Shown: in pieces, positions 11,407 through 32,328 of the stretch
Layout: the number at the start of each line of letters is the position of its first letter
Numbering within the stretch: the stretch's first letter is position 1
NCBI GenBank assembly: GCA_964057225.1
Contig: OZ059898.1
Coordinates: 20,646,001-20,710,000, forward strand
Length of the DNA stretch: 64,000 nucleotides
Source of the DNA: Auanema rhodensis
Lineage: Eukaryota > Animalia > Nematoda
Reading direction: 5' to 3'
Position numbers and translations under genes: made by a program
Notes under the pieces: model-generated
Seen by the model: the letters and a program-made list of their open reading frames with translations, nothing else
Databases searched by the model: none
What the model was told of the DNA's origin: nothing

Positions 11407-13685
11407 GTTTTTAGACTAATATGGACATGGGGAATCTAATTTTGAAAACCGCATCTCTTTATCTTTCACGTGAAGCGAGTTACATACCAAGTGCACATCA
11501 CGTGTACATTTAATTAGCATAAATTAAAGTTCACGTAAATTTCAAAGTCATGGTTACCATGAACCAATATCAATAAAAATTTGTTTTTAAACTAATATGG
11601 ACATGGGGAATCCAATTTCGAAAACCGCATCTCTTTATCTTTCACGTGAAGCGAGTTACATACCAAGTGCACATCACGTGTACATTTAATTAGCATAAAT
11701 TAAAGTTCACGTAAATTTCAAAGTCATGGTTACCATGAACCAATATCAATAAAAATTTGTTTTTAGACTAATATGGACATGGGGAATCTAATTTCGAAAA
11801 CCGCATCTCTTTATCTTTCACGTGAAGCGAGTTACATACCAAGTGCACAACACGTGTACATTTAATTAGCATAAATTAAAGTTCACGTAAATTTCAAAGT
11901 CATGGTTACCATGAACCAATAACAATAAAAATTTGTTTTTAAACTAATATGGACATGGGGAATCCAATTTCGAAAACCGCATCTCTTTATCTTTCACGTG
12001 AAGCGAGTTACCTACCAAGTGCACATCACGTGTACATTTAATTAGCATAAATTAAAGTTCACGTAAATTTCAAAGTCATGGTTACCATGAACCAATATCA
12101 ATAAAAATTTGTTTTTAGACTAATATGGACATGAGGAATCTAATTTTGAAAACCGCATCTCTTTATCTTTCACGTGAAGCGAGTTACATACCAAGTGCAC
12201 ATCACGTGTACATTTAATTAGCATAAATTAAAGTTCACGTAAATTTCAAAGTCATGGTTACCATGAACCAATATCAATAAAAATTTGTTTTTAAACTAAT
12301 ATGGACATGGGGAATCTAATTTCGAAAACCGCATCTCTTTATCTTTCACGTGAAGCGAGTTACATACCAAGTGCACATCACGTGTACATTTAATTAGCAT
12401 AAATTAAAGTTCACGTAAATTTCAAAGTCATGGTTACCATGAACCAATATCAATAAAAATTTGTTTTTAGACTAATATGGACATGGGGAATCTAATTTCA
12501 AAAACCGCATCTCTTTATCTTTCACGTGAAGCGAGTTACATACCAAGTGCACATCACGTGTACATTTAATTAGCATAAATTAAAGTTCACGTAAATTTCA
12601 AAGTCATGGTTACCATGAACCAATATCAATAAAAATTTGTTTTTAGACTAATATGGACATGGGGAATCTAATTTTGAAAACCGCATCTCTTTATCTTTCA
12701 CGTGAAGCGAGTTACATACCAAGTGCACATCACGTGTACATTTAATTAGCATAAATTAAAGTTCACGTAAATTTCAAAGTCATGGTTACCATGAACCAAT
12801 ATCAATAAAAATTTGTTTTTAGACTAATATGGACATGGGGAATCTAATTTCGAAAACCGCATCTCTTTATCTTTCACGTGAAGCGAGTTACATACCAAGT
12901 GCACATCACGTGTACATTTAATTAGCATAAATTAAAGTTCACGTAAATTTCAAAGTCATGGTTACCATGAACCAATATCAATAAAAATTTGTTTTTAGAC
13001 TAATATGGACATGGGGAATCTAATTTCAAAAACCGCATCTCTTTATCTTTCACGTGAAGCGAGTTACATACCAAGTGCACATCACGTGTACATTTAATTA
13101 GCATAAATTAAAGTTCACGTAAATTTCAAAGTCATGGTTACCATGAACCAATATCAATAAAAATTTGTTTTTAGACTAATATGGACATGGGGAATCTAAT
13201 TTTGAAAACCGCATCTCTTTATCTTTCACGTGAAGCGAGTTACATACCAAGTGCACATCACGTGTACATTTAATTAGCATAAATTAAAGTTCACGTAAAT
13301 TTCAAAGTCATGGTTACCATGAACCAATATCAATAAAAATTTGTTTTTAGACTAATATGGACATGGGGAATCTAACTTTGAAAACCGCATCTCTTTATCT
13401 TTCACGTGAAGCGAGTTACATACCAAGTGCACATCACGTGTACATTTAATTAGCATAAATTAAAGTTCACGTAAATTTCAAAGTCATGGTTACCATAAAC
13501 CAATATCAATAAAAATTTGTTTTTAGACTAATATGGACATGGGGAATCTAATTTTGAAAACCGCATCTCTTTATCTTTCACGTGAAGCGAGTTACATACC
13601 AAGTGCACATCACGTGTACATTTAATTAGCATAAATTAAAGTTCACGTAAATTTCAAAGTCATGGTTACCATGCACCAATATCAA
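11407..13685 (-). repeat. 176-bp satellite, inverted block of ~13 monomers
   Basis: Unit GTTTTTAGACTAATATGGACATGGGGAATC... is the reverse complement of the unit found from 13686 onward. Period is 176. Confidence 0.98.
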
Positions 13686-16600
13686 CAAAATTAGATTCCC
13701 CATGTCCATATTAGTCTAAAAACAAATTTTTATTGATATTGGTTCATGGTAACCATGACTTTGAAATTTACGTGAACTTTAATTTATGCTAATTAAATGT
13801 ACACGTGATCTGCACTTGTTATGTAACTCGCTTCGCGTGAAAGATAAAGAGATGCGGTTTTCAAAATTAGATTTCCCATGTCCATATTAGTCTAAAAACA
13901 AATTTTTATTGATATTGGTTCATGGTAACCATGACTTTGAAATTTACGTGAACTTTAATTTATGCTAATTAAATGTACACGTGATGTGCACTTGGTATGT
14001 AACTCGCTTCACGTGAAAGATAAAGAGATGCGGTTTTCAAAATTAGATTCTCCATGTCCATATTAGTCTAAAAACAAATTTTTATTGATATTGGTTCATG
14101 GTAACCATGACTTTGAAATTTACGTGAACTTTAATTTATGCTAATTAAATGTACACGTGATGTGCACTTGGTATGTAACTCGCTTCACGTGAGAGATAAA
14201 GAGATGCGGTTTTCAAAATTAGATTCCCCATGTCCATATTAGTCTAAAAACAAATTTTTATTGATATTGGTTCATGGTAACCATGACTTTGAAATTTACG
14301 TGAACTTTAATTTATGCTAATTAAATGTACACGTGATGTGCACTTGGTATGTAACTCGCTTCACGTGAAAGATAAAGAGATGCGGTTTTCAAAATTAGAT
14401 TCCCCATGTCCATATTAGTCTAAAAACAAATTTTCATTGATATTGGTTCATGGTAACCATGACTTTGAAATTTACGTGAACTTTAATTTATGCTAATTAA
14501 ATGTACACGTGATGTGCACTTGGTATGTAACTCGCTTCACGTGAAAGATAAAGAGATGCGGTTTTCAAAATTAGATTCCCCATGTCCATATTAGTCTAAA
14601 AACAAATTTTTATTGATATTGGTGCATGGTAACCATGACTTTGAAATTTACGTGAACTTTAATTTATGCTAATTAAATGTACACGTGATGTGCACTTGGT
14701 ATGTAACTCGCTTCACGTGAAAGATAAAGAGATGCGGTTTTTAAAATTAGATTCCCCATGTCCATATTAGTCTAAAAACAAATTTTTATTGATATTGGTT
14801 CATGGTAACCATGACTTTGAAATTTACGTGAACTTTAATTTATGCTAATTAAATGTACACGTGATGTGCACTTGGTATGTAACTCGCTTCACGTGAAAGA
14901 TAAAGAGATGCGGTTTTCAAAATTAGATTCCCCATGTCCATATTAGTCTAAAAACAAATTTTTATTGATATTGGTTCATTGTAACCATGACTTTGAAATT
15001 TACGTGAACTTTAATTTATGCTAATTAAATGTACACGTGATGTGCACTTGGTATGTAACTCGCTTCACGTGAAAGATAAAGAGATGCGGTTTTCAAAATT
15101 AGATTCCCCATGTCCATATTAGTCTAAAAACAAATTTTTATTGATATTGGTTCATGGTAACCATGACTTTGAAATTTACGTGAACTTTAATTTATGCTAA
15201 TTAAATGTACACGTGATGTGCACTTGGTATGTAACTCGCTTCACGTGAAAGATAAAGAGATGCGGTTTTCAAAATTAGATTCCCCATGTCCATATTAGTC
15301 TAAAAACAAATTTTTATTGATATTGGTTCATTGTAACCATGACTTTGAAATTTACGTGAACTTTAATTTATGCTAATTAAATGTACACGTGATGTGCACT
15401 TGGTATGTAACTCGCTTCACGTGAAAGATAAAGAGATGCGGTTTTCAAAATTAGATTCCCCATGTCCATATTAGTCTAAAAACAAATTTTTATTGATATT
15501 GGTGCATGGTAACCATGACTTTGAAATTTACGTGAACTTTAATTTATGCTAATTAAATGTACACGTGATGTGCACTTGGTATGTAACTCGCTTCACGTGA
15601 AAGATAAAGAGATGCGGTTTTTAAAATTAGATTCCCCATGTCCATATTAGTCTAAAAACAAATTTTTATTGATATTGGTTCATGGTAACCATGACTTTGA
15701 AATTTACGTGAACTTTAATTTATGCTAATTAAATGTACACGTGATGTGCACTTGGTATGTAACTCGCTTCACGTGAAAGATAAAGAGATGCGGTTTTCAA
15801 AATTAGATTCCCCATGTCCATATTAGTCTAAAAACAAATTTTTATTGATATTGGTTCATTGTAACCATGACTTTGAAATTTACGTGAACTTTAATTTATG
15901 CTAATTAAATGTACACGTGATGTGCACTTGGTATGTAACTCGCTTCACGTGAAAGATAAAGAGATGCGGTTTTCAAAATTAGATTCCCCATGTCCATATT
16001 AGTCTAAAAACAAGTTTTTATTGATATTGGTTCATGGTAACCATGACTTTGAAATTTACGTGAACTTTAATTTATGCTAATTAAATGTACACGTGATGTG
16101 CACTTGGTATGTAACTCGCTTCACGTGAAAGATAAAGAGATGCGGTTTTCAAAATTAGATTCCCCATGTCCATATTAGTCTAAAAACAAATTTTTATTGA
16201 TATTGGTTCATGGTAACCATGACTTTGAAATTTACGTGAACTTTAATTTATGCTAATTAAATGTACACGTGATGTGCACTTGGTATGTAACTCGCTTCAC
16301 GTGAAAGATAAAGAGATGCGGTTTTAAAAATTAGATTCCCCATGTCCATATTAGTCTAAAAACAAATTTTTATTGATATTGGTTCATGGTAACCATGACT
16401 TTGAAATTTACGTGAACTTTAATTTATGCTAATTAAATGTACACGTGATGTGCACTTGGTATGTAACTCGCTTCACGTGAAAGATAAAGAGATGCGGTTT
16501 TCAAAATTAGATTCCCCATGTCCATATTAGTCTAAAAACAAATTTTTATTGATATTGGTTCATGGTAACCATGACTTTGAAATTTACGTGAACTTTAATT

Positions 16601-16740
16601 TATGCTAATTAAATGTACACGTGATGTGCACTTGGTATGTAACTCGCTTCACGTGAAAGATAAAGAGATGCGGTTTTAAAAATTAGATTCCCCATGTCCA
16701 TATTAGTCTAAAAACAAATTTTTATTGATATTGGTTCATG
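13686..16740 (+). repeat. 176-bp satellite, ~17 monomers, majority orientation
   Basis: Unit CAAAATTAGATTCCCCATGTCCATATTAGTC... repeats with period 176 up to the LTR insertion. Confidence 0.98.
16736..16740. repeat. 5-bp target-site duplication TCATG (left copy; right copy 23614-23618)
   Basis: Satellite reads GGT-TCATG|TGTTTT...GCACA|TCATG-GTAACC. Removing the element plus one TCATG restores the 176-bp register. Confidence 0.96.
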
Positions 16741-17599
16741 TGTTTTGACTGGAGTCCTTTGAAGTAGGAGAGCGTAAAACAGGCATGGGTGGTTCAGTGG
16801 ATTTGAAGTGTAGAGAACGAGAACGCTAGGTTACTTGGACAACGATTTATTCAGAGAGAACTGGTAAAGACAACAGTGACAAAAAATAGAAAAATAGATG
16901 AACACAATACGAAGCAAGAATACAAAGTAATATGGAGCAGCAGCAACAGCAGAACGACGCTTGGAGCGGTCGTTGGATCAAGAGGTGAAGAATGGGAAAA
17001 GCTGCGAGCTTATATACGAATTCTACCGGGCGATATACAATACATATTAATGATGGCATGAAGAAATAGAGAAATAATTTACAACAAGAATACGAAATAA
17101 TATATAATAAATGAAATATAAAATAATCTAGGAATAATAGATACGTGGGCTGAATATTAGAATAGAATAGAATATAGAGAGAATACAGCATTTTGCCACA
17201 GATTGAATGTGCCTTCTGCTGTAAGTTGTGGGGGCAGGCCAAGTGTAGATGAGTCATGTCTTATCCTGTGCGGCATCTCCCAGATTTTGCAGGATGCGCG
17301 AGTGGGCGAATGAGTCATGAGCCATTTAGACCTCGATTGCAACTTACAAGATTATTGATTAAGCTAAACGAATTCTTAAGATTAAAATAGACTATAGGCA
17401 ATAAGAGAACAAGATTAACATAAAAGGTTAAGATGGATAGATGTGTTTAAGAGACAATAATGAAGGAACATCTGGTGAGTAATCGGATAAACTTGCATGT
17501 GTGTGTGCGGCACGTATGAGTCATAGGTGAATAAAATAGTGGGAATAAAGTGCATCGTTGTCCAAAAAGAGTATGGGAAAGATGGAGTGCGTTCGCACA
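16741..17599 (-). repeat. 3' LTR (859 bp)
   Basis: Direct repeat of 22755-23613, preceded on the minus strand by a purine-rich tract. One difference seen (17311 T vs 23325 G). Confidence 0.97.
16846..16851 (-). terminator. AATAAA polyadenylation signal in LTR (also 22860-22865)
   Basis: TTTATT on + strand, about 105 nt from the LTR 3' end and downstream of a TATA-like box. Confidence 0.6.
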
Positions 17600-17610
17600 C
17601 TCCCGCCGCC
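17600..17610 (-). other. Polypurine tract (GGCGGCGGGAG)
   Basis: G-rich tract immediately upstream of the 3' LTR TG on the minus strand, similar to interrupted PPTs of BEL/Pao elements. Confidence 0.8.
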
Positions 17611-17632
17611 GAATATGCTATAATAGCATTGT

Positions 17633-18349
17633 TCAGAAAAGGTCGACGTAGGAAGGCAGAGATTCCTTGCTCGTCGATGGCTTGTTTGGTGGTGTGGCTT
17701 CTGTCTTCTTCAGCTTTGGCTTTGAGGGAGTTTGAGTCCCTTGTGTGCAGATATCAGGTAAAGACCTCTTCTGGAAGAGGTTTTTGATGCAGCGAAGTTC
17801 CTCAATGATGAGGTTCAATGGTGCTGTGAGTTGTTGGATGTCCTTGCGGAGATCCTTCATCTCATTTACCAGAAGCTTGAGTTCTGGTTGCGCTTCCACT
17901 ACAATGATGTTGGATTTGCGTGGAGGCGATGTTTCACAGCTTCTCTTTCTTGATGGGGCCCTCAAAGGATCGTAGGGCATGTCCAATTTTACGTCGTCCA
18001 AGTGGTCCTTATGAATTCTTTCCACCAATTCGGTGAGTCGTTTCTCGTTGCCAAATAGTTGTAGATCAGTAAGCTCCTTTTCGAATACATTATAGGTCCT
18101 GGCTGTGTTGATAAAGTCCTTTATTTTGATGAAATAACAGAGAATATCAGTAGCGGCAAGTTGGATGTCTCTAGCAGGAGTATTCGTAATCGCTTCAAGT
18201 TGAAATAAAGTTTTCAGAGATAGATCCATGGATTGCAATAGGCCCTTGTAGTAATCATTTCTTTTGTCTAAGGACAGACGTAAGTATGATTGTTTTCTCT
18301 CGGCTGAGGAAGCAAGAGTATCGCGAATAGTGTTGGCGTGAGTTGACAT
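17633..18349 (-). CDS. 238-aa accessory ORF of unknown function between env and the 3' LTR
   Basis: Intact ATG-to-stop ORF ending just before the PPT, with basic patches (RAPSRKRS, PKPKLKK) and a heptad-like segment (LKLLVNEMKDLRKDIQQL). Confidence 0.75.
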   Translation of the reverse strand: MSTHANTIRDTLASSAERKQSYLRLSLDKRNDYYKGLLQSMDLSLKTLFQLEAITNTPARDIQLAATDILCYFIKIKDFINTARTYNVFEKELTDLQLFGNEKRLTELVERIHKDHLDDVKLDMPYDPLRAPSRKRSCETSPPRKSNIIVVEAQPELKLLVNEMKDLRKDIQQLTAPLNLIIEELRCIKNLFQKRSLPDICTQGTQTPSKPKLKKTEATPPNKPSTSKESLPSYVDLF

Positions 18350-18350
18350 G

Positions 18351-19190
18351 ATTAGGAATAAGAGTATGATAGCGACGTGGGTCTTCCGTTGAGTGATGAG
18401 GAACTTGAGTGATGCTTTCTCTAGTGAAGTATAGTGAATTTACTTCGCAAGAATAAGTGCTTTTGATCCACTGGATGCGTAGGAAAGTGATTTTGTCCTC
18501 GTTGTTGGTAAATGAGAGACATGCTTCCTGAGTGTATGGGCTGATGGTAAGTCGTTCTGATGTTCGGATTCGACATTCGTTTTGAGTGCATGACGATTCT
18601 TTTGTTGAAATCATGTTCAATTCTTGACATGCAGAGGTGTTTCCTATTTCTAACAGTATTATTGCAAGAAGAGGAATGACGGATTGCCTTCTTTTTGAGA
18701 AGAGTTTCTTCAATTTTCGTCCAATTGTCAGTGTGAGTGAGAAGATTATATAGCACCACAGACGAATTGGTTTGCCGATAACCCATGGTGTGTATAGTAG
18801 TCCGTAGCATAAGGCTGTGATCATATATACTATGAGTGTCAGTAGCAAGATTGAAGTCCAAGGCCAGCACGATGGATTGAGCAGGGTTGCTGTACAAAAT
18901 GTGCAGGTAACTGTAGAGCAGAAGTGGACTCCTGGGCATGTTAAGAACATGTGTTGAAGTCTGGAGTTGTGAAAAAATGTCCAACTGACTTGGTAGTCTG
19001 TCAATATTTCTGCTGTGGGAAGAGTGACGTCTCCGTTGTTACTACTGTTGAAGCATGTGTTTTGGATGCACACTTGTTGGTTTGCCGTACTGATTCCTTG
19101 GATATGAACTCCGTGGGAGTTGCATGAAATTGTTGGGTTTGCTGAGGCCATTGGTCCGAAAATCGCAAGTATTGTGAAGAAAGTGAGGAG
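18351..19190 (-). pseudogene. env: Phlebovirus-like envelope: signal peptide, short Cys-rich Gn-like domain, TM, second signal, first ~75 aa of Gc, then a deletion to the env tail
   Basis: LLTFFTILAIFGPMASA|NPTISC..., CPGVHFCSTVTCTFCTATLLNPSCWP, hydrophobic TM, and IGNTSA|CQE...QEACL...YFTR. At ~18404 the sequence jumps out of frame to the last 53 nt of the env tail. Confidence 0.85.
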
Positions 19191-21430
19191 TGTATTGGTT
19201 GTATCTCCGTACCATACTCGTGGTAAGTTACGTAAGTTGGTTCTTCTTTCTTCATGAACTTGTTCTTCTGGTGTTGCGTTGCCCTTGAGTTTTTCTGGGA
19301 TCTCGTTGTCTGAGATTTCCAATGGGTGCAGTAAGTTGACTGGTCTTTTTATTTCTCGACCTGTTTCCGAAATCAGCGTTGCTTCTCTGATGTTTCCTGA
19401 TCTGTCGGGGTGAACTTGAATTATTTTTCCTGTACTCCATTTGTGGCGGGGAATAGGAAGCTCGTTGATTAGGACGATTTGACCAATGGATGGAGTTAAC
19501 TTTGTTCCCGCTTTCTTAACTGAAATGTTGTGATGGTGTGTAGCGCGGATCTCTTTCAGGTATAGGTCTGTCCAGAGTTCCCAGAACTTGTTTGTGCGTT
19601 TCCTTGATGAGTGAATGGCTCGTTCTGTATCAGCTTGAGTTTGTAGCGCTGGGCTGTCAATGTAATCCTCATCCATTTCTTCTTCTGATTCGACAGAGAT
19701 GTTCAAGTCGATGTCTTTATAGATGAAATCGCATGGTCGTATGATCTCATCTTTGTTCGTATCTGTACCGATGTATGTGAGTGGACGTGTGTTTATTGTA
19801 GCTTCACACTCTGCAAGGGTTATTGTGAGCTCTTCAGTAGTTGGAGTACTGTGGAGTGTTTTGTAAAGAGCTTCCTTTACGGACCTAATAAGTCTTTCGT
19901 AAAAACCGCCTTGCCATGGGGCATAGGGGGTGATGTTGTGCCAGCGAATTTTGTATTGATTTCCGCTGTCTGTTGTAGTGAAGAGTTTGTTTGCAACCTT
20001 TTGACCAAGCTCAAAGGTGCTTGCGTTGTCGCAGGTTATGCTCGATGGGCATCCACGTCGTGCCCAGATTTCCGTAAACAGTTGAGAAATGCGGTAGTTG
20101 TGAGGTTGTGAATCACCTCAAGATGGATGAGTCTTGTCACCGTACAGGTGTAGATGCAGCTCCAGACTTTCGTATTTCCGTCTTTGACTGTGATGGGTCC
20201 GAAGTAGTCGAGACCTACATGTTTGAAGGGTTGGCTTCGTTGGAGTCGTCTGGATGGTACGTTTCCTGATGGAGGGTACGTAAATGGCCGGTTGTTAAGC
20301 CTTTGACAATTTGCGCACTTTCTTATGACTGCTTGTGTCTGGGAACGTAGTTGAGGAATCCAGTATTTTTGTCGTACTTCCGCCATGGTATGAGCAGTAC
20401 TTTTGTGAAATTTTTCATGAAAGTGCTCTATGAGGAGTCGTGCGGTTGGTGTTTTGGGAAGGATGATGATAGGAAGCTTAGCTGATTGCTCTAGCTCAGC
20501 GTTTTCCATTCGTCCTCTACTGTGCCAGAGGTGATCTCTGAGGAGTGGACGGAGATCGTTTCTTTGGGCTGCTGTCAGACGAACCATCAAGTTTCTTTGA
20601 TGAAGGTGTAGTAGATTTAGTTCTGCTTCTTCATAATGTTGAGGTGTACGAGCTTCAGTGAGTGGATAATGAGTTGCTATCCATTTTTCTTGTGCCTGTG
20701 TCCATGAGGAACAGTCTGATATCCATGGTTCTTCGTTTGGGTCGTCATCCGTAGTTGTCATGTGAACATTCACTTCATTCTGTGGAAGAGTGAATAATGG
20801 ACCATTGATTGCTCGTTCGAGTTGAGCTTGTGGATTCCACCAGTAATGGTCGCTTAGCTCTGCTGTGGTACAACCTCTTGTGGCGATGTCGGCTGGATTA
20901 TCCTTCGTGTTGATATAACCAAAGAAGGTCTTTATTTCCATATCTTCCAGTTGTTCTGCGCATTCGTTGATTTCTTTGATGCGGTTTTGTACCAAGACCC
21001 CAGTTGTTTTCTGGTCTGGTTTCTGTCGGATCCAAGCAAGTGCTATCTCAGAGTCGGATAGAAAGGTAGCAGTTTCTATCTTGATGTTGCCTCTGATTTC
21101 TTTGGCGATTTTCAGAGTGTTTGATACTCCTATTGTAAGAGCAGAGATTTCTGCTTTTGGGATTGTGATGGATGAACTCTTGGAGTGCAACTTTGATTTT
21201 GCAAACATGAGCCTGGGTTTGCGAGTTGATGCTGATAAGATGTAGACGCAAAATCCTAACGCTGATCCGCTGGAATCTGTGCAAGTGACCAGATGATATG
21301 AGTTTGTTGGGTCTGATGGTAGTGAGCGAGGAATCGCTTTTACCATGTGAAAATTGTCTGACAATTCTTTCCATTTTTGTTGTAGCTCATGGGGAAGTGT
21401 TGTGTCCCAGTCGAAGTTTTCTGTCCACAT
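19191..21430 (-). pseudogene. pol: pol 3' part: Pao-type RNase H region, integrase (HHCC, DDE core, C-terminal DUF5641-like domain); 5'-truncated with a 1-nt frameshift at ~20068
   Basis: Motifs CTDSS, FAKSKL, TIPKAE, SDSEIALAWI, NPADIATRG, H..H...YWIPQLR...CANC and VGLDYFGP. After the shift, my manual translation gives WARRGCPSSITCDNASTF...PWQGGFYERLIRSVK...NTRPLTY, open and in frame with ORF 18255-19706 (FWELW...KRPVNLLHPLE). Confidence 0.93.
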
Positions 21431-22269
21431 TGCGATTGTTCACCAGCCGAAGATACCGTGAATTGTCGATGCAAAGACTACTCTTTGAATACATCATTTG
21501 AAAATGTGAAAAGTGCCTTACCACTCATCACACCTGCCTACTCTATCGAATCTTCAAATCGCAAAGTTCACATAACTGTCAACCGTAACATTATGGCCGA
21601 ACTACACATCACAATTGATGGCAAATTCCAAAGCTCATTCAATTACAGCTCGGAATTTTGCGACATAACAGACTCCATGTTAACAGGCTGTTACAACTGT
21701 CAAAACGGAGCACAGGCTAAAATTATATGTTCCTCATCAACAAATACTCTCGCGGCAACAACTTGCGAAGGTACAGCATTCATGCTACACTGCAGCCCTG
21801 AAGGAACAATGAACACTATTCGACTTCCAATGACAACAGCTTCACCTCGAACACAGTGTTCATACACTTGCGGAAAACAAACGAAGTCATTTTTGCTCAC
21901 CGGAATATTATATTACGTGAATAATATGGAAGATCTCAACAAACACTACGTCGATGGCAATCACTCCTCCATTCATGAGTCAGTTATATCTTTCCCATGG
22001 CCTGATATCACTCATTTCTACGACATTTACCTTAACTGGTACAGAGAACTTCTATTTTGTCTCATACTGATATTATCCGCATTGGCCATTTCGTATTACA
22101 TCATGACGACATACTCCATCGCCATCGCGAGCAACACACTTTTCTTCGCTATCAGAATTATTAAAACCACGCTCCGCCTGCCCATCATTACGCTTCGTTT
22201 CCTCAGGCGCCTCCTCTTCCTCATCACTCAACGGAAGACCCACGTCGCTATCATACTCTTATTCCTAAT
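21431..22269 (+). pseudogene. env: Inverted fragment: C-terminal half of phlebovirus-like Gc with TM anchor and tail
   Basis: CDCSPAEDTVNCRC, LTGCYNCQNGAQAKIICSS, CSYTCG, LTGILYY, then a hydrophobic TM. 22217-22269 is the exact reverse complement of 18351-18403. The left breakpoint is approximate (within a few nt). Confidence 0.88.
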
Positions 22270-22415
22270 TTTTTTGTCACTGTTGTCTTTACCAGTTCTC
22301 TCTGAATAAATCGTTGTCCAAGTAACCTAGCGTTCTCGTTCTCTACACTTCAAATCCACTGAACCACCCATGCCTGTTTTACGCTCTCCTACTTCAAAGG
22401 ACTCCAGTCAAAACA
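22270..22415 (+). repeat. Inverted 146-bp copy of the LTR 3' (U5) terminus ending exactly at CA
   Basis: Reverse complement of 16741-16886 and 22755-22900, no mismatch seen. Confidence 0.96.
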
Positions 22416-22644
22416 TTAGCGCGGAGGTATATCCACGTAGGGTGGATATGTGTCTCCGGAGAGTATCCTCGTTAGCGAGGATTCTCTCTTGATCTTCAGA
22501 GTTAAGATCTTCGGTAATATTGTTCAACTCCTCAATGAGGGAGTTGATCATGTTGATGTCAAGGTCAATAGCCAGCATCTCTTTTTCACGAAGTTCAATC
22601 ATCCAGGTCATTTTGTTTGACTGGAGATTGATTTGACGAGTCAT
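22416..22644 (-). pseudogene. gag: Probable gag N-terminal fragment (MTRQINLQSNK...GYTSAL), truncated by the inverted LTR end
   Basis: First ATG-initiated open frame, ~110 nt after the PBS, with helical/coiled-coil composition. The assignment is by position, not by a diagnostic motif. Confidence 0.65.
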
Positions 22645-22739
22645 GAAAGATTTTCTTCGTCCGTCCTGTTTTTGAAGCTTAGTCAAAAACGAAGTACACC
22701 TAGCGATCCAAGCGTTGGCCCGAGAGGTATCGGAAGCCT

Positions 22740-22754
22740 CGGCCTCATGCACCA
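22740..22754 (-). other. Primer-binding site TGGTGCATGAGGCCG, probably tRNA-Gly
   Basis: TGG directly follows the 5' LTR CA. TGGTGCAT is complementary to the ...AUGCACCA 3' end of tRNA-Gly(GCC). Confidence 0.8.
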
Positions 22755-23613
22755 TGTTTTGACTGGAGTCCTTTGAAGTAGGAGAGCGTAAAACAGGCAT
22801 GGGTGGTTCAGTGGATTTGAAGTGTAGAGAACGAGAACGCTAGGTTACTTGGACAACGATTTATTCAGAGAGAACTGGTAAAGACAACAGTGACAAAAAA
22901 TAGAAAAATAGATGAACACAATACGAAGCAAGAATACAAAGTAATATGGAGCAGCAGCAACAGCAGAACGACGCTTGGAGCGGTCGTTGGATCAAGAGGT
23001 GAAGAATGGGAAAAGCTGCGAGCTTATATACGAATTCTACCGGGCGATATACAATACATATTAATGATGGCATGAAGAAATAGAGAAATAATTTACAACA
23101 AGAATACGAAATAATATATAATAAATGAAATATAAAATAATCTAGGAATAATAGATACGTGGGCTGAATATTAGAATAGAATAGAATATAGAGAGAATAC
23201 AGCATTTTGCCACAGATTGAATGTGCCTTCTGCTGTAAGTTGTGGGGGCAGGCCAAGTGTAGATGAGTCATGTCTTATCCTGTGCGGCATCTCCCAGATT
23301 TTGCAGGATGCGCGAGTGGGCGAAGGAGTCATGAGCCATTTAGACCTCGATTGCAACTTACAAGATTATTGATTAAGCTAAACGAATTCTTAAGATTAAA
23401 ATAGACTATAGGCAATAAGAGAACAAGATTAACATAAAAGGTTAAGATGGATAGATGTGTTTAAGAGACAATAATGAAGGAACATCTGGTGAGTAATCGG
23501 ATAAACTTGCATGTGTGTGTGCGGCACGTATGAGTCATAGGTGAATAAAATAGTGGGAATAAAGTGCATCGTTGTCCAAAAAGAGTATGGGAAAGATGGA
23601 GTGCGTTCGCACA
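22755..23613 (-). repeat. 5' LTR (859 bp)
   Basis: Direct repeat of 16741-17599, followed on the minus strand by the PBS. Confidence 0.97.
23023..23030 (-). promoter_or_regulatory. TATA-like box TATATAAG in the 5' LTR (also 17009-17016)
   Basis: CTTATATA on + strand, ~160 nt upstream of AATAAA, matching the usual U3-R-U5 order. Confidence 0.5.
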
Positions 23614-26600
23614 TCATGGTAACCATGACTTTGAAATTTACGTGAACTTTAATTTATGCTAATTAAATGTACACGTGATGTGCACTTGGTGTGTAACTCG
23701 CTTCACGTGAAAGATAAAGAGATGCGGTTTTCAAAATTAGATTCCCCATGTCCATATTAGTCTAAAAACAAATTTTTATTGATATTGGTGCATGTTAACC
23801 ATGACTTTGAAATTTACGTGAACTTTAATTTATGCTAATTAAATGTACACGTGATGTGCACTTGGTGTGTAACTCGCTTCACGTGAAAGATAAAGAGATG
23901 CGGTTTTCAAAATTAGATTCTCCATTTCCATATTAGTCTAAAAACAAATTTTTATTGATATTGGTGCATGGTAACCATGACTTTGAAATTTACGTGAACT
24001 TTAATTTATGCTAATTAAATGTACACGTGATGTGCACTTGGTATGTAACTCGCTTCACGTGAGAGATAAAGAGATGCGGTTTTTAAAATTAGATTCCCCA
24101 TGTCCATATTAGTCTAAAAACAAATTTTTATTGATATTGGTTCATGGTAACCATGACTTTGAAATTTACGTGAACTTTAATTTATGCTAATTAAATGTAC
24201 ACGTGATGTGCACTTGGTATGTAACTCGCTTCACGTGAAAGATAAAGAGATGCGGTTTTCAAAATTAGATTCCCCATGTCCATATTAGTCTAAAAACAAA
24301 TTTTTATTGATATTGGTGCATGGTAACCATGACTTTGAAATTTACGTGAACTTTAATTTATGCTAATTAAATGTACACGTGATGTGCACTTGGTATGTAA
24401 CTCGCTTCACGTGAAAGATAAAGAGATGCGGTTTTCGAAATTAGATTCCCCATGTCCATATTAGTCTAAAAACAAATTTTTATTGATATTGGTTCATGGT
24501 AACCATGACTTTGAAATTTACGTGAACTTTAATTTATGCTAATTAAATGTACACGTGATGTGCACTTGGTATGTAACTCGCTTCACGTGAAAGATAAAGA
24601 GATGCGGTTTTCGAAATTAGATTCCCCATGTCCATATTAGTTTAAAAACAAATTTTTATTGATATTGGTTCATGGTAACCATGACTTTGAAATTTACGTG
24701 AACTTTAATTTATGCTAATTAAATGTACACGTGATGTGCACTTGGTATGTAACTCGCTTCACGTGAAAGATAAAGAGATGCGGTTTTCAAAATTAGATTC
24801 CCCATGTCCATATTAGTCTAAAAACAAATTTTTATTGATATTGGTTCATGGTAACCATGACTTTGAAATTTACGTGAACTTTAATTTATGCTAATTAAAT
24901 GTACACGTGATGTGCACTTGGTATGTAACTCGCTTCACGTGAAAGATAAAGAGATGCGGTTTTCAAAATTAGATTCCCCATATCCATATTAGTCTAAAAA
25001 CAAATTTTTATTGATATTGGTTCATGGTAACCATGACTTTGAAATTTACGTGAACTTTAATTTATGCTAATTAAATGTACACGTGATCTGCACTTGTTAT
25101 GTAACTCGCTTCGCGTGAAAGATAAAGAGATGCGGTTTTCAAAATTAGATTCTCCATGTCCATATTAGTCTAAAAACAAATTTTTATTGATATTGGTTCA
25201 TGGTAACCATGACTTTGAAATTTACGTGAACTTTAATTTATGCTAATTAAATGTACACGTGATGTGCACTTGGTATGTAACTCGCTTCACGTGAGAGATA
25301 AAGAGATGCGGTTTTCAAAATTAGATTCCCCATGTCCATATTAGTCTAAAAACAAATTTTTATTGATATTGGTTCATGGTAACCATGACTTTGAAATTTA
25401 CGTGAACTTTAATTTATGCTAATTAAATGTACACGTGATGTGCACTTGGTATGTAACTCGCTTCACGTGAAAGATAAAGAGATGCGGTTTTCGAAATTAG
25501 ATTCCCCATGTCCATATTAGTTTAAAAACAAATTTTTATTGATATTGGTTCATGGTAACCATGACTTTGAAATTTACGTGAACTTTAATTTATGCTAATT
25601 AAATGTACACGTGATGTGCACTTGGTATGTAACTCGCTTCACGTGAAAGATAAAGAGATGCGGTTTTCAAAATTAGATTCCCCATGTCCATATTAGTCTA
25701 AAAACAAATTTTTATTGATATTGGTTCATGGTAACCATGACTTTGAAATTTACGTGAACTTTAATTTATGCTAATTAAATGTACACGTGATGTGCATTTG
25801 GTATGTAACTCGCTTCACGTGAAAGATAAAGAGATGCGGTTTTCAAAATTAGATTCCCCATATCCATATTAGTCTAAAAACAAATTTTTATTGATATTGG
25901 TTCATGGTAACCATGACTTTGAAATTTACGTGAACTTTAATTTATGCTAATTAAATGTACACGTGATCTGCACTTGTTATGTAACTCGCTTCGCGTGAAA
26001 GATAAAGAGATGCGGTTTTCAAAATTAGATTCTCCATGTCCATATTAGTCTAAAAACAAATTTTTATTGATATTGGTTCATGGTAACCATGACTTTGAAA
26101 TTTACGTGAACTTTAATTTATGCTAATTAAATGTACACGTGATGTGCACTTGGTATGTAACTCGCTTCACGTGAGAGATAAAGAGATGCGGTTTTCAAAA
26201 TTAGATTCCCCATGTCCATATTAGTCTAAAAACAAATTTTTATTGATATTGGTTCATGGTAACCATGACTTTGAAATTTACGTGAACTTTAATTTATGCT
26301 AATTAAATGTACACGTGATGTGCACTTGGTATGTAACTCGCTTCACGTGAAAGATAAAGAGATGCGGTTTTCAAAATTAGATTCCCCATGTCCATATTAG
26401 TCTAAAAACAAATTTTTATTGATATTGGTTCATGGTAACCATGACTTTGAAATTTACGTGAACTTTAATTTATGCTAATTAAATGTACACGTGATGTGCA
26501 CTTGGTATGTAACTCGCTTCACGTGAAAGATAAAGAGATGCGGTTTTTAAAATTAGATTCCCCATGTCCATATTAGTCTAAAAACAAATTTTTATTGATA

Positions 26601-27792
26601 TTGGTTCATGGTAACCATGACTTTGAAATTTACGTGAACTTTAATTTATGCTAATTAAATGTACACGTGATGTGCACTTGGTATGTAACTCGCTTCACGT
26701 GAAAGATAAAGAGATGCGGTTTTCAAAATTAGATTCCCCATGTCCATATTAGTCTAAAAACAAATTTTTATTGATATTGGTTCATGGTAACCATGACTTT
26801 GAAATTTACGTGAACTTTAATTTATGCTAATTAAATGTACACGTGATGTGTACTTGGTATGTAACTCGCTTCACGTGAGAGATAAAGAGATGCGGTTTTC
26901 AAAATTAGATTCCCCATGTCCATATTAGTCTAAAAACAAATTTTTATTGATATTGGTTCATGGTAACCATGACTTTGAAATTTACGTGAACTTTAATTTA
27001 TGCTAATTAAATGTACACGTGATGTGCATTTGGTATGTAACTCGCTTCACGTGAAAGATAAAGAGATGCGGTTTTCAAAATTAGATTCCCCATGTCCATA
27101 TTAGTCTAAAAACAAATTTTTATTGATATTGGTTCATGGTAACCATGACTTTGAAATTTACGTGAACTTTAATTTATGCTAATTAAATGTACACGTGATG
27201 TGCACTTGGTATGTAACTCGCTTCACGTGAAAGATAAAGAGATGCGGTTTTCAAAATTAGATTCCCCATGTCCATATTAGTCTAAAAACAAATTTTTATT
27301 GATATTGGTGCATGGTAACCATGACTTTGAAATTTACGTGAACTTTAATTTATGCTAATTAAATGTACACGTGATGTGCACTTGGTATGTAACTCGCTTC
27401 ACGTGAAAGATAAAGAGATGCGGCTTTCGAAATTAGATTCCCCATGTCCATATTAGTCTAAAAACAAATTTTTATTGATATTGGTTCATGGTAACCATGA
27501 CTTTGAAGTTTACGTGAACTTTAATTTATGCTAATTAAATGTACACGTGATGTGCACTTGGTATGTAACTCGCTTCACGTGAAAGATAAAGAGATGCGGT
27601 TTTCAAAATTAGATTCCGCATGTCCATATTAGTCTAAAAACAAATTTTTATTGATATTGGTGCATGGTAACCATGACTTTGAAATTTACGTGAACTTTAA
27701 TTTATGCTAATTAAATGTACACGTGATGTGCACTTGGTATGTAACTCGCTTCACGTGAAAGATAAAGAGATGCGGTTTTCGAAATTAGATTC
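23614..27792 (+). repeat. 176-bp satellite, ~24 monomers
   Basis: Same unit and period, lying between the LTR element and the LINE. Confidence 0.98.
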
Positions 27793-27852
27793 AGTTTTGT
27801 CAGTTGACCTAGTTTGTCAGTTGACCTAGTTTGTCAGTTGACCTAGTTTGTC
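27793..27852 (+). repeat. 3.5 tandem copies of 17-bp AGTTTGTCAGTTGACCT at the LINE 5' end
   Basis: Copies start at 27793 (one extra T), 27811, 27828 and 27845 (partial). Confidence 0.95.
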
Positions 27853-28051
27853 TGTCGTGAGTGGTTGTCTCCCTTTGGTTCTAATTGGTATTCACTGTTG
27901 CCGTCTTGTTTCTTCATCTGATTCAGTATCGTCGGACTGGTTTTAATAAGGTGCGCACTTTTCTCAAGTCGTTTCATTTCTTTCCTTTATAATTACTTTT
28001 GTGTTTTTTTCCTATTTTTTATATCTCGTGTTTTTCATTCCTTTTTTCACT

Positions 28052-29068
28052 ATGTCCTCTTCCCAATCTGTTTCAAAATCCGATTTTACCGCACTTTCTG
28101 ATTCTCTCAAAGAATCTTTCTCCCAATTTTCTTCTGAATTACGTGGCATTATTTTCTCTATCCAAACTACCGTTAATTCTAATTGTACCCGTATTGCGGA
28201 ACTAGAATCAAAGGTTGCCTCACTTTGTAGCTCGCTCAAAAATGGTACTTCTCAAGAGGTTGTATCTAATTTAGTTAACATAAGTTCAGAGAAGTCGAAA
28301 TTCCCTGACCGTGCTACAAAACTCCTTTGGTTCAATGTTCCATTGAGCAGTACGGACTTTTCCTCCGATCCCACTTCTCTTGTGTCGGATGTTCTTAATC
28401 TGTCCAAGAACACTGAAATATGTAGTTTATTAAGCTCTCGTGCAATTGTTGTTACCCGCTACAATTCTAAGACCAAACTCCCTGGCCCTATTGCTATAAA
28501 TTGCCCTAGTGAACAAATTCGTGATACTTGCATACAACTAATCCGCAATCACAAAGAAGTTCTTTCCGCTTCACTCAAAAAAACTTTTGTGAGAAGAGAC
28601 TATTTCCCTTTCGAAATAGAACTTGAACGTGAATTGAAGGAAAAGTGCAAGGTTATGAATTCTACTGGGACTAACACCCTTCATATTGTTCGTAATTTCA
28701 AAATTGTTAAGGTCATCAAAAAAATATCCTCAATTAGTTCTCCTACTCCAGCTCCTACCTGTACTCATCTTATTTCTCCTGTTTTCCCTTCTTCCCCAAA
28801 TATTGTACAAATTGCTCCTCCACCTTCCAAAGCAAGCCGTACTTCTCTTGAGGTCGACAGGTCTTCTTGTCAATTTCCTTCACCCTCAAGACGAAAAACA
28901 CGACATGCTCCTTATGCTCTGAGATCACTCTCTTGTCCCAGAGTTAAAAACCCAACAATACCTCTTACCGCACCTTCCCTATCCGACCCTACCTCAAGTC
29001 TCCCCCTAGTTCCTAATCATACTCCCTCCACCAAATCACTTCCACCTCCAAAACATAGCTTTCGTTAA
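28052..29068 (+). CDS. LINE ORF1 protein
   Basis: Open frame 28001-29068 with first ATG at 28052. N-terminal heptads (RIAELESKVASL), an FVRRD motif and a Pro/Ser-rich basic tail, positioned upstream of APE-RT. Confidence 0.85.
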   Translation: MSSSQSVSKSDFTALSDSLKESFSQFSSELRGIIFSIQTTVNSNCTRIAELESKVASLCSSLKNGTSQEVVSNLVNISSEKSKFPDRATKLLWFNVPLSSTDFSSDPTSLVSDVLNLSKNTEICSLLSSRAIVVTRYNSKTKLPGPIAINCPSEQIRDTCIQLIRNHKEVLSASLKKTFVRRDYFPFEIELERELKEKCKVMNSTGTNTLHIVRNFKIVKVIKKISSISSPTPAPTCTHLISPVFPSSPNIVQIAPPPSKASRTSLEVDRSSCQFPSPSRRKTRHAPYALRSLSCPRVKNPTIPLTAPSLSDPTSSLPLVPNHTPSTKSLPPPKHSFR

Positions 29069-31859
29069 TCATACTTCTTTCCCTGCCCCTCTCTCGGTCT
29101 ATTTCTCTAATGCTCGTTCTGTTTTGAACAAATTCCCCCATTTCAATTTTGTTTCCACTGCTTATAACCCTGACATCATTTGTTTCAATGAAAGTTGGCT
29201 AAATAGTGATATCTGTAGCTCAACTTTACCACTTTCTGATTTATATTATGTTATCCGTAGTGATAGGAGTGTTGATACTAGAGGAGGTGGTGTTTTGGTT
29301 TTGATCAAAAAACACCTCTCTTTAATCAATGTTACCTCACATTCTTTTAGTAATTATTGTCAAGTTGTATGTTTCACATTAGCTTCCCCCCCTTTTCTTA
29401 CTTTTTGTATATGTTACCGTGCCCCATCTTGCTCAACCGCATCTTTCAACCTTTTCCTTGATTATCTCAATTCTTGTGAAATGTTCAAAGAAAAATTTAT
29501 TCTCATTGGCGATTTTAATTTTTCTCGTATCAACTGGGAAAACTACTCTTTGACTAAAAACTCCCCCCAAGCCAAATCCTTCTTAGAATTTATTGTATCC
29601 AAAGGATGCTCCCAACTTGTGTCCTTTCCCACTCGTAGTACATTTACTCTGGATTGTGTTGTAACTAATGTATCTGAAACTGTTTCCGATATTGATTGTT
29701 TACCACCCTTTGGCACTTCCGATCATCAATCTCTTTTTTTCCATGTCGATTGTAATAATTTATTATCACCCCAACGTTTTAACGGTAATCTCAACCTTAG
29801 AACTATCTCCCAGTCCAGCCTCAGTTCTCCTAAACTCTCTATCTGTCATCCTAAACGTTTGCTTTCAAGAAATTTCAATGCGGCAGATTATAATAAAATT
29901 AACTATATAATCAGCTCTATTGACTTTGTACACTCTTTTTCACATCTCGATGTTTGTACGGCGTATGAATCATTCACTGAAATACTCAGAGATGTCATCC
30001 GCTGTAATGTCCCTAATTTCAAAGTTACTAAAACCAAGCAGTCCATTGCACGTTCCATATCTTTACTTAACAACAGACTTGCTAGGCTGTCTAAATGTTT
30101 TGGTGTCACGTCTTCTGTTAGATACCGTGCGCTTGTACGTAGATTAAACGGCTTGATCAAACGCCAACGTGCTTTTGAAGAACATAAAATTTCTCTTCAA
30201 GGTAATCAAAAATTGTTTTACAAATTTTGTCGCGGTCGTTTGGGTGGCTCAGTGGAAGCACCTTTTCTCAAACATAACAACAACACAATATCAGATTCTG
30301 TTGATAAAGCTAACTTACTATCAGAAATGTTTTCTGAACCTTTTTCCACGCCATACAATAGTCAATGTTCTCCATGTCCTACAAACAAGTCTGCTGTTAC
30401 CAGTCCACAAAAGCATGTCTACATCGAGGAACTTACAGTCTATAAGTTTCTCAGAAACCTTCCTAATCGTGTATGTACGTCACCTGATGGAATCCCCTAT
30501 TTATTTCTTAATAGGTGTGCTCCTTCTCTTGTTCGTCCTATTACATATTTTTTTATTGCGTTTGTGTCGTTTGGTGTTTGTCCGCCTATCTCTTTAACTG
30601 CTTCTATCTCTAAAGTTTTTGAACGCATCATAAGAAAAGAATTGATAGATTATTTACTTCGTAAAAATCTAATTTGTTCTTCTCAGCATGGTTTTCTTCC
30701 TGGTTGTAGCACGTCTACCGCACTTCTGAGTGCTCACTCTCAATGGAGATGCCTTAAAGAACGCCGCAACGCAATTTATACTGCTTTTATTGATTTCTCA
30801 AAAGCATTTGATAAAATAAATCATGATATTTTGCTACATAAATTACACTCTTTTGGTTTACATAGCTCGCTCATTAAATTTTTCAAACAATTTCTTGCTG
30901 GTAGATCATTCTCTGTTGTACAGGGCGATGTTTTATCTAAACCCCGGGAAATACATTGCGGTGTTCCTCAAGGGACTGTTTTGGGCCCTCTTTTCTTTCT
31001 TTTGTATGTTAATGATTTACTGGAAAAATTTACAGGCGACACTCAAGCTATTGCTTATGCTGACGATATTAAACTATTCTCGGCAAATGCTCCTAGCCTG
31101 CAGTGTTCACTTGATTTTCTTTCAGCTTGGTGTAAAAGCAATGATATGCTCATAAACGTTAAAAAGTCTAAAATCATGGTTATAGGGAAAGTTGAAGGCG
31201 CTGTGAGCTTTCAAATCAATGACTGTTTACTTGAATCCGTCAATAACTTTAAAGATTTGGGAGTTATTATAGACAAAAACCTTTCTTTTGGTCCCCACTT
31301 TCAATCAATTACCTCTACCGCTACCAAACGTTGTAAGCTCATTCTAAGATGCTTCAACAGTTCTTGCCCCAAACTACTATTCCGTTTGTTTTGTTGCTAT
31401 GTTAGACCTATATTGGAGTATGCCTCTGAGGTTTGGTCTCCATACCTCAAAAAAGACATTCAATTTATAGAGAGTGTTCAAAAAAGGTTTGTCAACGCTA
31501 TTTTTAAGCGTGCCAATCTTGAGATTCATGGCTACATAAATAAGCTCGAGTTCCTCAAGGCAGATGAGCTGATAAACAGACGTGTTATCGCTGATTTTTG
31601 CCAATATTTCAAAATAGCCAAGGGTAACTCAATCCTTAGTAAAACCTTGTTCAGACTAAAAGAGCATCAATATTCATTTCGTCAGCATGATTATCTTTTG
31701 GTAGCACCACAGTACTTCTCAAAAGCTGCACTATCAAGTTTTGAATATCGCTGGATCCAAGATTGGAATGAACTTCATCCCATGTTTGTTAATATTGAGA
31801 AAACGTATAATTTTCGTAGCTACCTGAAAAACTGTAAATTTCGCAATTGTAAAATTTAA
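29061..31859 (+). CDS. LINE ORF2: AP endonuclease + reverse transcriptase, with an in-frame deletion in the RT N-terminus; true start uncertain
   Basis: APE motifs NARSVLNK, NESWL, RGGGV, CYRAP, IGDFN, TLDCV, SDH. RT motifs PISLT, QHGF, IDFSKAFD, GVPQGTVLGP, YADD, KDLGV. CR1-type tail YVRPILEYASEVWSP...IESVQKRF. The frame is open from 29010. Confidence 0.92.
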   Translation, partial: FVNHTSFPAPLSVYFSNARSVLNKFPHFNFVSTAYNPDIICFNESWLNSDICSSTLPLSDLYYVIRSDRSVDTRGGGVLVLIKKHLSLINVTSHSFSNYCQVVCFTLASPPFLTFCICYRAPSCSTASFNLFLDYLNSCEMFKEKFILIGDFNFSRINWENYSLTKNSPQAKSFLEFIVSKGCSQLVSFPTRSTFTLDCVVTNVSETVSDIDCLPPFGTSDHQSLFFHVDCNNLLSPQRFNGNLNLRTISQSSLSSPKLSICHPKRLLSRNFNAADYNKINYIISSIDFVHSFSHLDVCTAYESFTEILRDVIRCNVPNFKVTKTKQSIARSISLLNNRLARLSKCFGVTSSVRYRALVRRLNGLIKRQRAFEEHKISLQGNQKLFYKFCRGRLGGSVEAPFLKHNNNTISDSVDKANLLSEMFSEPFSTPYNSQCSPCPTNKSAVTSPQKHVYIEELTVYKFLRNLPNRVCTSPDGIPYLFLNRCAPSLVRPITYFFIAFVSFGVCPPISLTASISKVFERIIRKELIDYLLRKNLICSSQHGFLPGCSTSTALLSAHSQWRCLKERRNAIYTAFIDFSKAFDKINHDILLHKLHSFGLHSSLIKFFKQFLAGRSFSVVQGDVLSKPREIHCGVPQGTVLGPLFFLLYVNDLLEKFTGDTQAIAYADDIKLFSANAPSLQCSLDFLSAWCKSNDMLINVKKSKIMVIGKVEGAVSFQINDCLLESVNNFKDLGVIIDKNLSFGPHFQSITSTATKRCKLILRCFNSSCPKLLFRLFCCYVRPILEYASEVWSPYLKKDIQFIESVQKRFVNAIFKRANLEIHGYINKLEFLKADELINRRVIADFCQYFKIAKGNSILSKTLFRLKEHQYSFRQHDYLLVAPQYFSKAALSSFEYRWIQDWNELHPMFVNIEKTYNFRSYLKNCKFRNCKI

Positions 31860-32328
31860 TATGTATTGTTGCTATTGTTAACTACATATATATTTCACTA
31901 TTTTTTTTGTTTTTTTCGTTTCTGTGAGCTTACTCTACCTGTTTTCTTGTCTCCTTTGTTTACCTGACTCAGTATTTCCCGCGTATCCGACCTATAGACA
32001 TGAGTCATACGGTCCGAGCGTGGTTATCACTCATTGACAGAACGGGCTTGACCTTTGTTTTCTTGGTATCACCGCACCTCGTCAACGGTAGAAGTGATAA
32101 GCTTCGAATTGTTTCTTATTTCAAAGCTGAGATCAGTAAAAGTCTTCTCACAACAATCGTCAAGAACATGGTGTTTCAAGTTTCACAAATCGAACATTAC
32201 GTTAGTGTTCTCTCTTTTTCTTATCTTTTTCTCAACTACCGAAAGGTTAATCTTTTTTTCACACAACAACATACATTTTTCACTCATATATTGTAACCTG
32301 TGGTATTGTTGAACTGAAATAAATAAAA

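Follow-up and report, generated by a model that had tools for sequence, protein, structure and literature searches.

A defective Atlas-like belpaovirus copy with a perfect 147-nt inverted repeat in nematode satellite DNA: a probable accident on one cDNA molecule and a potential incidental source of double-stranded RNA

A retroelement of the Atlas-like belpaovirus group, carrying an inverted piece of its own 3′ end just behind the start of gag, interrupts a satellite array in the 64-kb window analysed here (by window we mean the whole stretch of DNA). The interpretation that we favour, with moderate confidence, is that this element is a recent, non-autonomous and rearranged copy, that its rearrangement resulted from an accidental event on a single cDNA molecule, and that the copy constitutes a potential incidental source of double-stranded RNA (dsRNA). 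The positions of the features on which this interpretation is built are collected in Table 1.

Table 1. Positions of the LTR element, its parts and the surrounding satellite arrays in the 64-kb window
Feature	Position	Strand	Remarks
Whole LTR element, Atlas-like belpaovirus derivative	16741..23613	-	6,873 bp; sits in a 176-bp satellite monomer, with 5-bp target-site duplication TCATG
5′ LTR	22755..23613	-	859 bp, TG...CA; TATATAAG at LTR position 584, AATAAA at 749
3′ LTR	16741..17599	-	859 bp; differs from 5′ LTR at one position, which is not in the arm region; purine-rich tract directly upstream
Hairpin arm 1	22754..22900	-	LTR positions 714-859 (3′ part of R with AATAAA, and U5) plus first post-LTR base
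Loop	22417..22753	-	337 nt; primer-binding-type sequence starting TGG at the LTR edge, and first ~110 codons of a divergent gag
Hairpin arm 2	22270..22416	+	Inverted copy of the LTR end; LTR sense on + strand; outer end is the exact LTR terminus
Inverted block from the element's own 3′ end	21389..22416	+	Env Gc C-terminal part, 53-nt copy and arm 2; bounded here by the ORF start and the arm end
53-nt perfect inverted repeat, copy within inverted block	22217..22269	+	
53-nt perfect inverted repeat, copy at normal 3′ position	18351..18403	- (element strand)	
Pol-env coding remnant, one broken unit	18255..21430	-	Partial Peptidase_A17, integrase zinc-binding domain, DUF5641, Gn-like region, Gc start (Phlebovirus_G2 1-82)
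Orphan 238-codon ORF between env and 3′ LTR	17633..18349	-	Same frame as the env end; 33 nt between its stop and the LTR
351-bp satellite	1-11406		32.5 copies, 97% identical
176-bp satellite, first orientation	11407-13690		
176-bp satellite, opposite orientation	~13686 to 16740, 23614-27792, 32346-64000		97-98% identity

The two LTRs of the element differ at one of their 859 positions. Candidates for its two primer sites are a purine-rich stretch that immediately precedes the 3′ LTR and a TGG-initiated sequence that immediately follows the 5′ LTR. A tRNA scan of the 64-kb window returned no tRNA gene with which the latter sequence could be compared. When the host flanks are joined to each other across the element, they give 83 nt of pure satellite sequence, of which the window has exactly 100 further occurrences. 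The insertion of the element is clean, recent and of the integrase type. Note also that each LTR contains an ATG-initiated ORF of 136 codons on the minus strand (16847-17257 and 22861-23271), spanning U3/R and without a match in Pfam or NCBIfam; this ORF is probably fortuitous.

The window consists almost wholly of satellite DNA, formed by a 351-bp and a 176-bp unit that have no detectable similarity to each other. The two arrays abut directly at 11406/11407, and the 176-bp array flips its orientation head-to-head at approximately 13686-13690, thus holding an inversion junction. Two retroelements interrupt the 176-bp array, namely the LTR element (16741-23613, minus strand) and a non-LTR element (approximately 27793-32345, plus strand), and no further copies or intact relatives of the LTR element were found within the 64-kb window. 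The non-LTR element has an open 355-codon ORF1, for which an NCBIfam scan gave no match, and an open 911-codon ORF2 encoding an endonuclease and a reverse transcriptase (RT). Three 17-nt tandem repeats are found at its 5′ end (27796-27855) and a short A-rich tail at the other, the tail being flanked on either side by an 11-nt satellite motif (32329-32356); about 78 nt of the satellite monomer are apparently missing at this site.

Searches against Pfam detect a partial Peptidase_A17 domain, Integrase_H2C2, DUF5641 and positions 1-82 of Phlebovirus_G2 on the element strand, and positions 264-324 of Phlebovirus_G2 together with Phlebo_G2_C on the opposite strand. The element-strand piece additionally has a weak Gn-like match, and the best solved-structure match of the opposite-strand env piece is the Gc protein of Atlas virus (cryo-EM entry 7a4a, E 1.3e-12). 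The closest named relatives of the pol region are from Ancylostoma, Necator, Dictyocaulus, Heterorhabditis and Nippostrongylus, with a local identity to any database relative of at most about 48-57%; a nematode belonging broadly to this assemblage is very probably the host. For the C-terminal env piece, the word-index protein search was blank, which is explained by its length window, and an exhaustive search found 518 relatives. Exact protein look-up of eight ORFs of the window, including two that end in the arms, found none of them in the collection. Because LTRs, a target duplication, Bel/Pao pol domains and a Gn-Gc env are all present, the element can be placed, by these features, as a defective derivative of the Atlas-like group of belpaoviruses (Belpaoviridae). 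This agrees with the first-pass annotation, which had proposed an enveloped belpaovirus LTR element; the Bel/Pao pol domains and the phlebovirus-like Gn-Gc env lie in a minus-strand element. It adds a member to known kinds of elements and is not a new kind.

The reference point for this group is Atlas virus, an endogenous belpaovirus that is found intact in the hookworm Ancylostoma ceylanicum; its 9,204 nt include a single polyprotein gene of 2,828 residues and LTRs of 271 nt. Cer13 is a related nematode belpaovirus that likewise has a phlebovirus-like Gn-Gc env (PMC9094657). Like Atlas virus, the element in the window has LTRs and Bel/Pao pol domains, the frame of which runs on into Gn-like and Gc-like env regions, and the C-terminal part of its env matches 7a4a best. 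Unlike the intact Atlas virus, it measures 6,873 bp, has LTRs of 859 bp and is without most of gag, the protease and RT. It differs from Atlas virus also in that its env has lost the middle portion, the two remaining pieces lying on opposite strands, and in having the extra orphan ORF of 238 codons after env.

The defects of the copy were mapped by aligning it to complete Gag-Pol-Env relatives of 2,566-3,145 residues, in which the domains follow each other in the order DUF1759, DUF1758, RVT_1, Peptidase_A17, integrase, DUF5641 and Phlebovirus_G2. Matches to these relatives start only at about residue 1015-1087 (or at residue 1444 of 3145), past DUF1759, DUF1758 and RVT_1. No DUF1758 or RVT_1 match was found in the element, and hence no protease and no RT of its own (for the latter, a YVDN variant motif has been noted for nematode members). 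The gag gene has suffered one truncation, which leaves about 110 codons. In pol, one large deletion has removed the protease and RT and reaches through the first fifth of the A17 domain, and one frameshift lies in the integrase region; the two long frames contain no premature stop. In env, a segment of roughly 130-170 Gc codons is absent from the whole element, the C-terminal part of about 280 codons has been relocated and inverted, and the remaining join on the element strand changes the frame once. With most of gag, the protease and RT absent, the copy is non-autonomous; the first-pass annotation had made no mention of the loss of RT and protease.

Two further coding stretches stand apart from this comparison. 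The start of gag has no match in Pfam, in NCBIfam or by BLASTP against 150 relatives. The orphan ORF near the 3′ LTR begins about where the polyprotein of the relatives ends, and it is without a match in Pfam, NCBIfam, a word search and BLASTP against the same number of relatives. A BLASTP comparison of these two stretches with each other also found nothing. A single-sequence structural model of the orphan ORF is poor (mean pLDDT 50.8) and all-helical, with disordered linkers. The ORF may be an accessory gene; alternatively, it may be a C-terminal extension found only in this lineage.

Repeat finding and blastn both delimit a perfect inverted repeat at the 5′ end of the element, the two arms of which are 147 nt long, 100% complementary and separated by a spacer of 337 nt. 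The last 146 nt of the LTR account for 146 of the 147 nt, and the 147th pair is formed with the first base past the LTR. Since the same 146 nt recur in the 3′ LTR, at 16741-16886, the arms are copied LTR sequence and not a chance match; there is no realistic expectation of meeting a perfect inverted repeat of 147 nt by chance. The first-pass annotation had described 22270-22415 as an exact inverted copy of 22755-22900, across a spacer of 339 bp. The inverted copy is real and perfect, and only the lengths need correction, from 146 to 147 nt for the arms and from 339 to 337 nt for the spacer. The same annotation had assigned the spacer to the primer-binding site and the start of gag, which is what the TGG-initiated sequence and the approximately 110 gag codons of the loop amount to. 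It had also noted a TATA-like box, found as TATATAAG on the element strand at approximately 23030-23023, and had expected the stem to cover U5 and the poly(A) signal; the arm indeed comprises the 3′ part of R, with AATAAA inside it, and U5.

The second arm is the end of an inverted block of about 1 kb, which sits just behind the start of gag, in the place where the rest of gag, the protease and RT would be expected. Read on the plus strand, this block leads from the C-terminal part of env, containing the end of the fusion domain, Phlebo_G2_C and a hydrophobic anchor, through the 53-nt stretch directly into the last 146 nt of the LTR, whereas at the 3′ end of the element the 53-nt stretch is followed on the element strand by the orphan ORF, the purine tract and the full 3′ LTR. 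This differing order after the 53-nt stretch indicates that the block is derived from the 3′ end of the element itself, with a stretch skipped internally. Its env portion, the C-terminal one, matches relatives on the opposite strand only, and the element strand ends at approximately guide residue 2165; being absent from its normal place, this part has been moved and not merely copied. The two retained env parts overlap by just the 53-nt repeat. The earlier description of the whole block as an inverted copy therefore applies to the LTR end and has to be changed to a relocation for env, and the approximately 840 nt of antisense env that had been reported beside the arm are confirmed by the ORF at 21389-22309 (plus strand), which matches Phlebovirus_G2, Phlebo_G2_C and solved Gc structures. 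Not a single difference separates the copies of the duplicated stretches (146/147 nt and 53 nt), which, together with an env frame that is still open over 306 codons, fits a single recent event.

As to the ORF at 21389-22309 itself, its ATG lies close to the border of the block, and its 306 open codons take in domain III of Gc together with the stem and the membrane anchor. In principle, a shortened Env product could be encoded by this ORF, which runs against the direction of the element.

The origin that we propose for this arrangement is a pre-integration accident on one cDNA molecule, which could have involved template switching during reverse transcription or, alternatively, an end-joining or autointegration-like event; one possible route would be for the linear DNA to have been joined by its U5 end to a site within gag. 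Three points favour the cDNA stage: arm 2 ends on its outer side precisely at the LTR terminus, one more base matches in the primer-binding region, and normal LTRs and a target duplication enclose the whole rearranged structure. By our estimate, the chance that independent deletions in two copies would divide env into parts with a 53-nt overlap is a few percent. Such a partition is thus hard to obtain from two independently shortened copies, and it points to the rearrangement of one molecule. A single-event origin needs four novel joins, and no one simple strand-transfer path was found that gives all of them; the joins that can be inspected have 0-1 nt of microhomology, which does not discriminate between the routes.

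Two simpler routes were considered and rejected. In autointegration, a reverse transcript is attacked at internal sites by its own ends (PMC2644782). Plain autointegration into a circle gives the join between gag and the LTR terminus, but the circle would be without two flanking LTRs and a host target duplication; its products being circles, autointegration cannot be the whole origin. A simple snap-back duplication is ruled out by the 337-nt spacer and by the internal skip in the block. As a variant of the proposed origin, the structure could have been inherited from a master copy of the same origin and spread in trans. No obvious block to reverse transcription is present in it, the internal arm being identical, and not complementary, to the minus-strand strong-stop DNA. 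We do not think that the rearrangement was selected, and there is no sign of selection on the structure.

An integration-based alternative explains the LTR terminus equally well. A second copy may have integrated in inverted orientation into the gag gene of a resident copy, after which deletions driven by palindrome instability would have removed most of the second copy together with parts of the host copy. Such nested events are common in repeat-rich regions, a second retroelement lies only 4 kb away, and the outer end of arm 2, an exact LTR terminus abutting gag, is what integrase would give. We nevertheless regard this course of events as unlikely. One insertion and three large deletions would have to fit into the period over which a single substitution arose in the LTRs, and it is left unexplained why the env part retained in inverted form is precisely what the resident copy lacks, apart from a 53-nt overlap. 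The match also takes in the first base of the primer-binding region after the LTR; integration would not produce this, although a single base has a one-in-four chance of matching.

Returning to the copy that we take to be the outcome of a cDNA-stage accident, its predicted RNA is strongly structured. When the element strand from 23000 to 22200 is folded as RNA, both arms pair in a continuous stem of 147 bp, with a minimum free energy of -442.6 kcal/mol as compared with -214.5 +/- 10 kcal/mol for shuffled sequences (z -22.7). The arm within the 5′ LTR (LTR positions 714-859) is located downstream of the TATA-type box at LTR position 584. A transcript promoted by the 5′ LTR, or read-through on either strand, would consequently carry both arms and would fold into a perfect 147-bp stem with a 337-nt loop; given such arms, it makes no difference to the stem which strand is transcribed. 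An element-strand transcript would continue after the stem into the approximately 840 nt of antisense env. The AATAAA of the 5′ LTR, which is the sole AATAAA of the LTR on the element strand, lies in arm 1 and could, judging from its position, end some transcripts before arm 2 is reached; neither the loop nor the inverted block contains an AATAAA on the element strand. A hairpin RNA of this kind would be a substrate for the dsRNA machinery, through ADAR editing and/or Dicer, and since it would suit this machinery, the copy is a potential incidental source of small RNAs, which could be directed against the R/U5 leader and env of the family. The satellite location may be heterochromatic, which would count against the production of hairpin RNA. 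It is possible, if not the outcome we would expect, that small RNAs or editing are detectable on the arms.

Natural loci with which such a copy may be compared are known in plants and in nematodes. Mu killer of maize is a DNA-transposon derivative with a hairpin of about 4 kb that arises by read-through from a flanking gene, and its silencing activity was shown genetically (PMC3440606). Like Mu killer, the copy in the window is a natural derivative containing a partial inverted duplication of family sequence that includes the terminal repeat (here the 147-nt and 53-nt repeats), and a hairpin RNA would be expected from it. Unlike Mu killer, it is an animal LTR retroelement with a predicted stem of 147 bp and a putative promoter in its own LTR. 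With the endogenous pararetroviruses of tomato (PMC9868043) it shares the nature of an endogenised reverse-transcribing virus in which inverted rearrangements represent potential dsRNA against relatives; the tomato case differs in concerning plant siRNA pathways and expressed intronic or intergenic loci, and it is documented by small-RNA data. Similarly to the ADAR-edited repeats of Caenorhabditis elegans, it has long (near-)perfect inverted repeats of transposon origin that would form a hairpin if transcribed, but the C. elegans repeats are mostly non-coding, of the DNA-transposon type and located inside expressed genes, in which the arms in the window differ from them (PMC7084138).

The first-pass annotation had put the copy forward as a candidate 'killer' locus. 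By analogy with Mu killer and MuDR, the copy could act as an effective trans-silencing locus, the hairpin being diced and the primary small RNAs recruiting an RNA-dependent RNA polymerase, so that the enveloped family would be heritably silenced. The presence of the element's own sequence as a perfect inverted duplication agrees with such a role, as do the arms consisting of R/U5, which every genomic RNA of the family would carry, and the antisense env that follows. The named relatives suggest a nematode host of clade V type, and in nematodes, RNAi is amplified by RNA-dependent RNA polymerases and is directed at repeats (PMC4323106). Fischer and Ruvkun state that the way in which LTR retrotransposons and viral env genes of Caenorhabditis nematodes are initially targeted for silencing "remains unknown" (PMC7084138), and in tomato, rearranged inverted-repeat viral integrations yield much siRNA (PMC9868043). 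Against this stands the finding that hairpin RNAs from palindromic repeats of C. elegans are ADAR-edited, which prevents RNAi in the wild type, and become Dicer substrates only once ADAR editing is lost (PMC7084138). Moreover, there is a single copy in the window and it lies in satellite DNA, the AATAAA of arm 1 may end some transcripts early, and nothing points to selection on the structure. We therefore consider effective trans-silencing by this copy distinctly unlikely. Of similarly low probability in our estimate is a measurable silencing effect on the whole family. The more specific idea, again drawn by analogy, that an LTR-driven hairpin copy would serve in a nematode as the primary dsRNA trigger, seeding small RNAs amplified by RNA-dependent RNA polymerase and heritable silencing of its family, appears similarly unlikely to us. 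If true, Mu killer would have a retroviral counterpart in an animal, and the question of how the initial recognition of such elements comes about would be answered.

It is very unlikely that the inverted piece was placed inside the element by an assembly or read artefact, that is, by a chimeric or fold-back read. The region lies within tens of kb of satellite DNA of 97-98% identity, which is hard to assemble, and polishing could make arms perfectly identical; however, fold-backs give one symmetric turn, while the 1-kb block in this element has two different borders that are not symmetric, skips a stretch internally and corresponds to sequence that is absent from another place in the element, and a clean target duplication surrounds the whole element. 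Still further from what we would credit is a use of the inverted block as protein, which would interfere in a dominant-negative manner with the fusion activity of related Env proteins: domain III of class II fusion proteins can, when isolated, act as a fusion inhibitor, and the 306-codon frame is open, has an ATG and retains domain III, the stem and the anchor region intact, but neither a promoter nor a signal peptide can be made out, antisense pol lies upstream, and an open frame is equally expected for any young fragment.

The accidental rearrangement of one cDNA molecule, which remains our preferred explanation, has produced a copy that, if transcribed, would be bound to make perfect dsRNA of the family leader along with antisense env, and that is in this respect a concrete candidate for a silencing trigger. 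If the copy is silent, or if its transcripts are merely edited by ADAR, it would be a well-resolved example of the inverted internal rearrangements that reverse-transcribing elements undergo. The element also adds to the picture of retroelements accumulating in the satellite arrays of nematodes.
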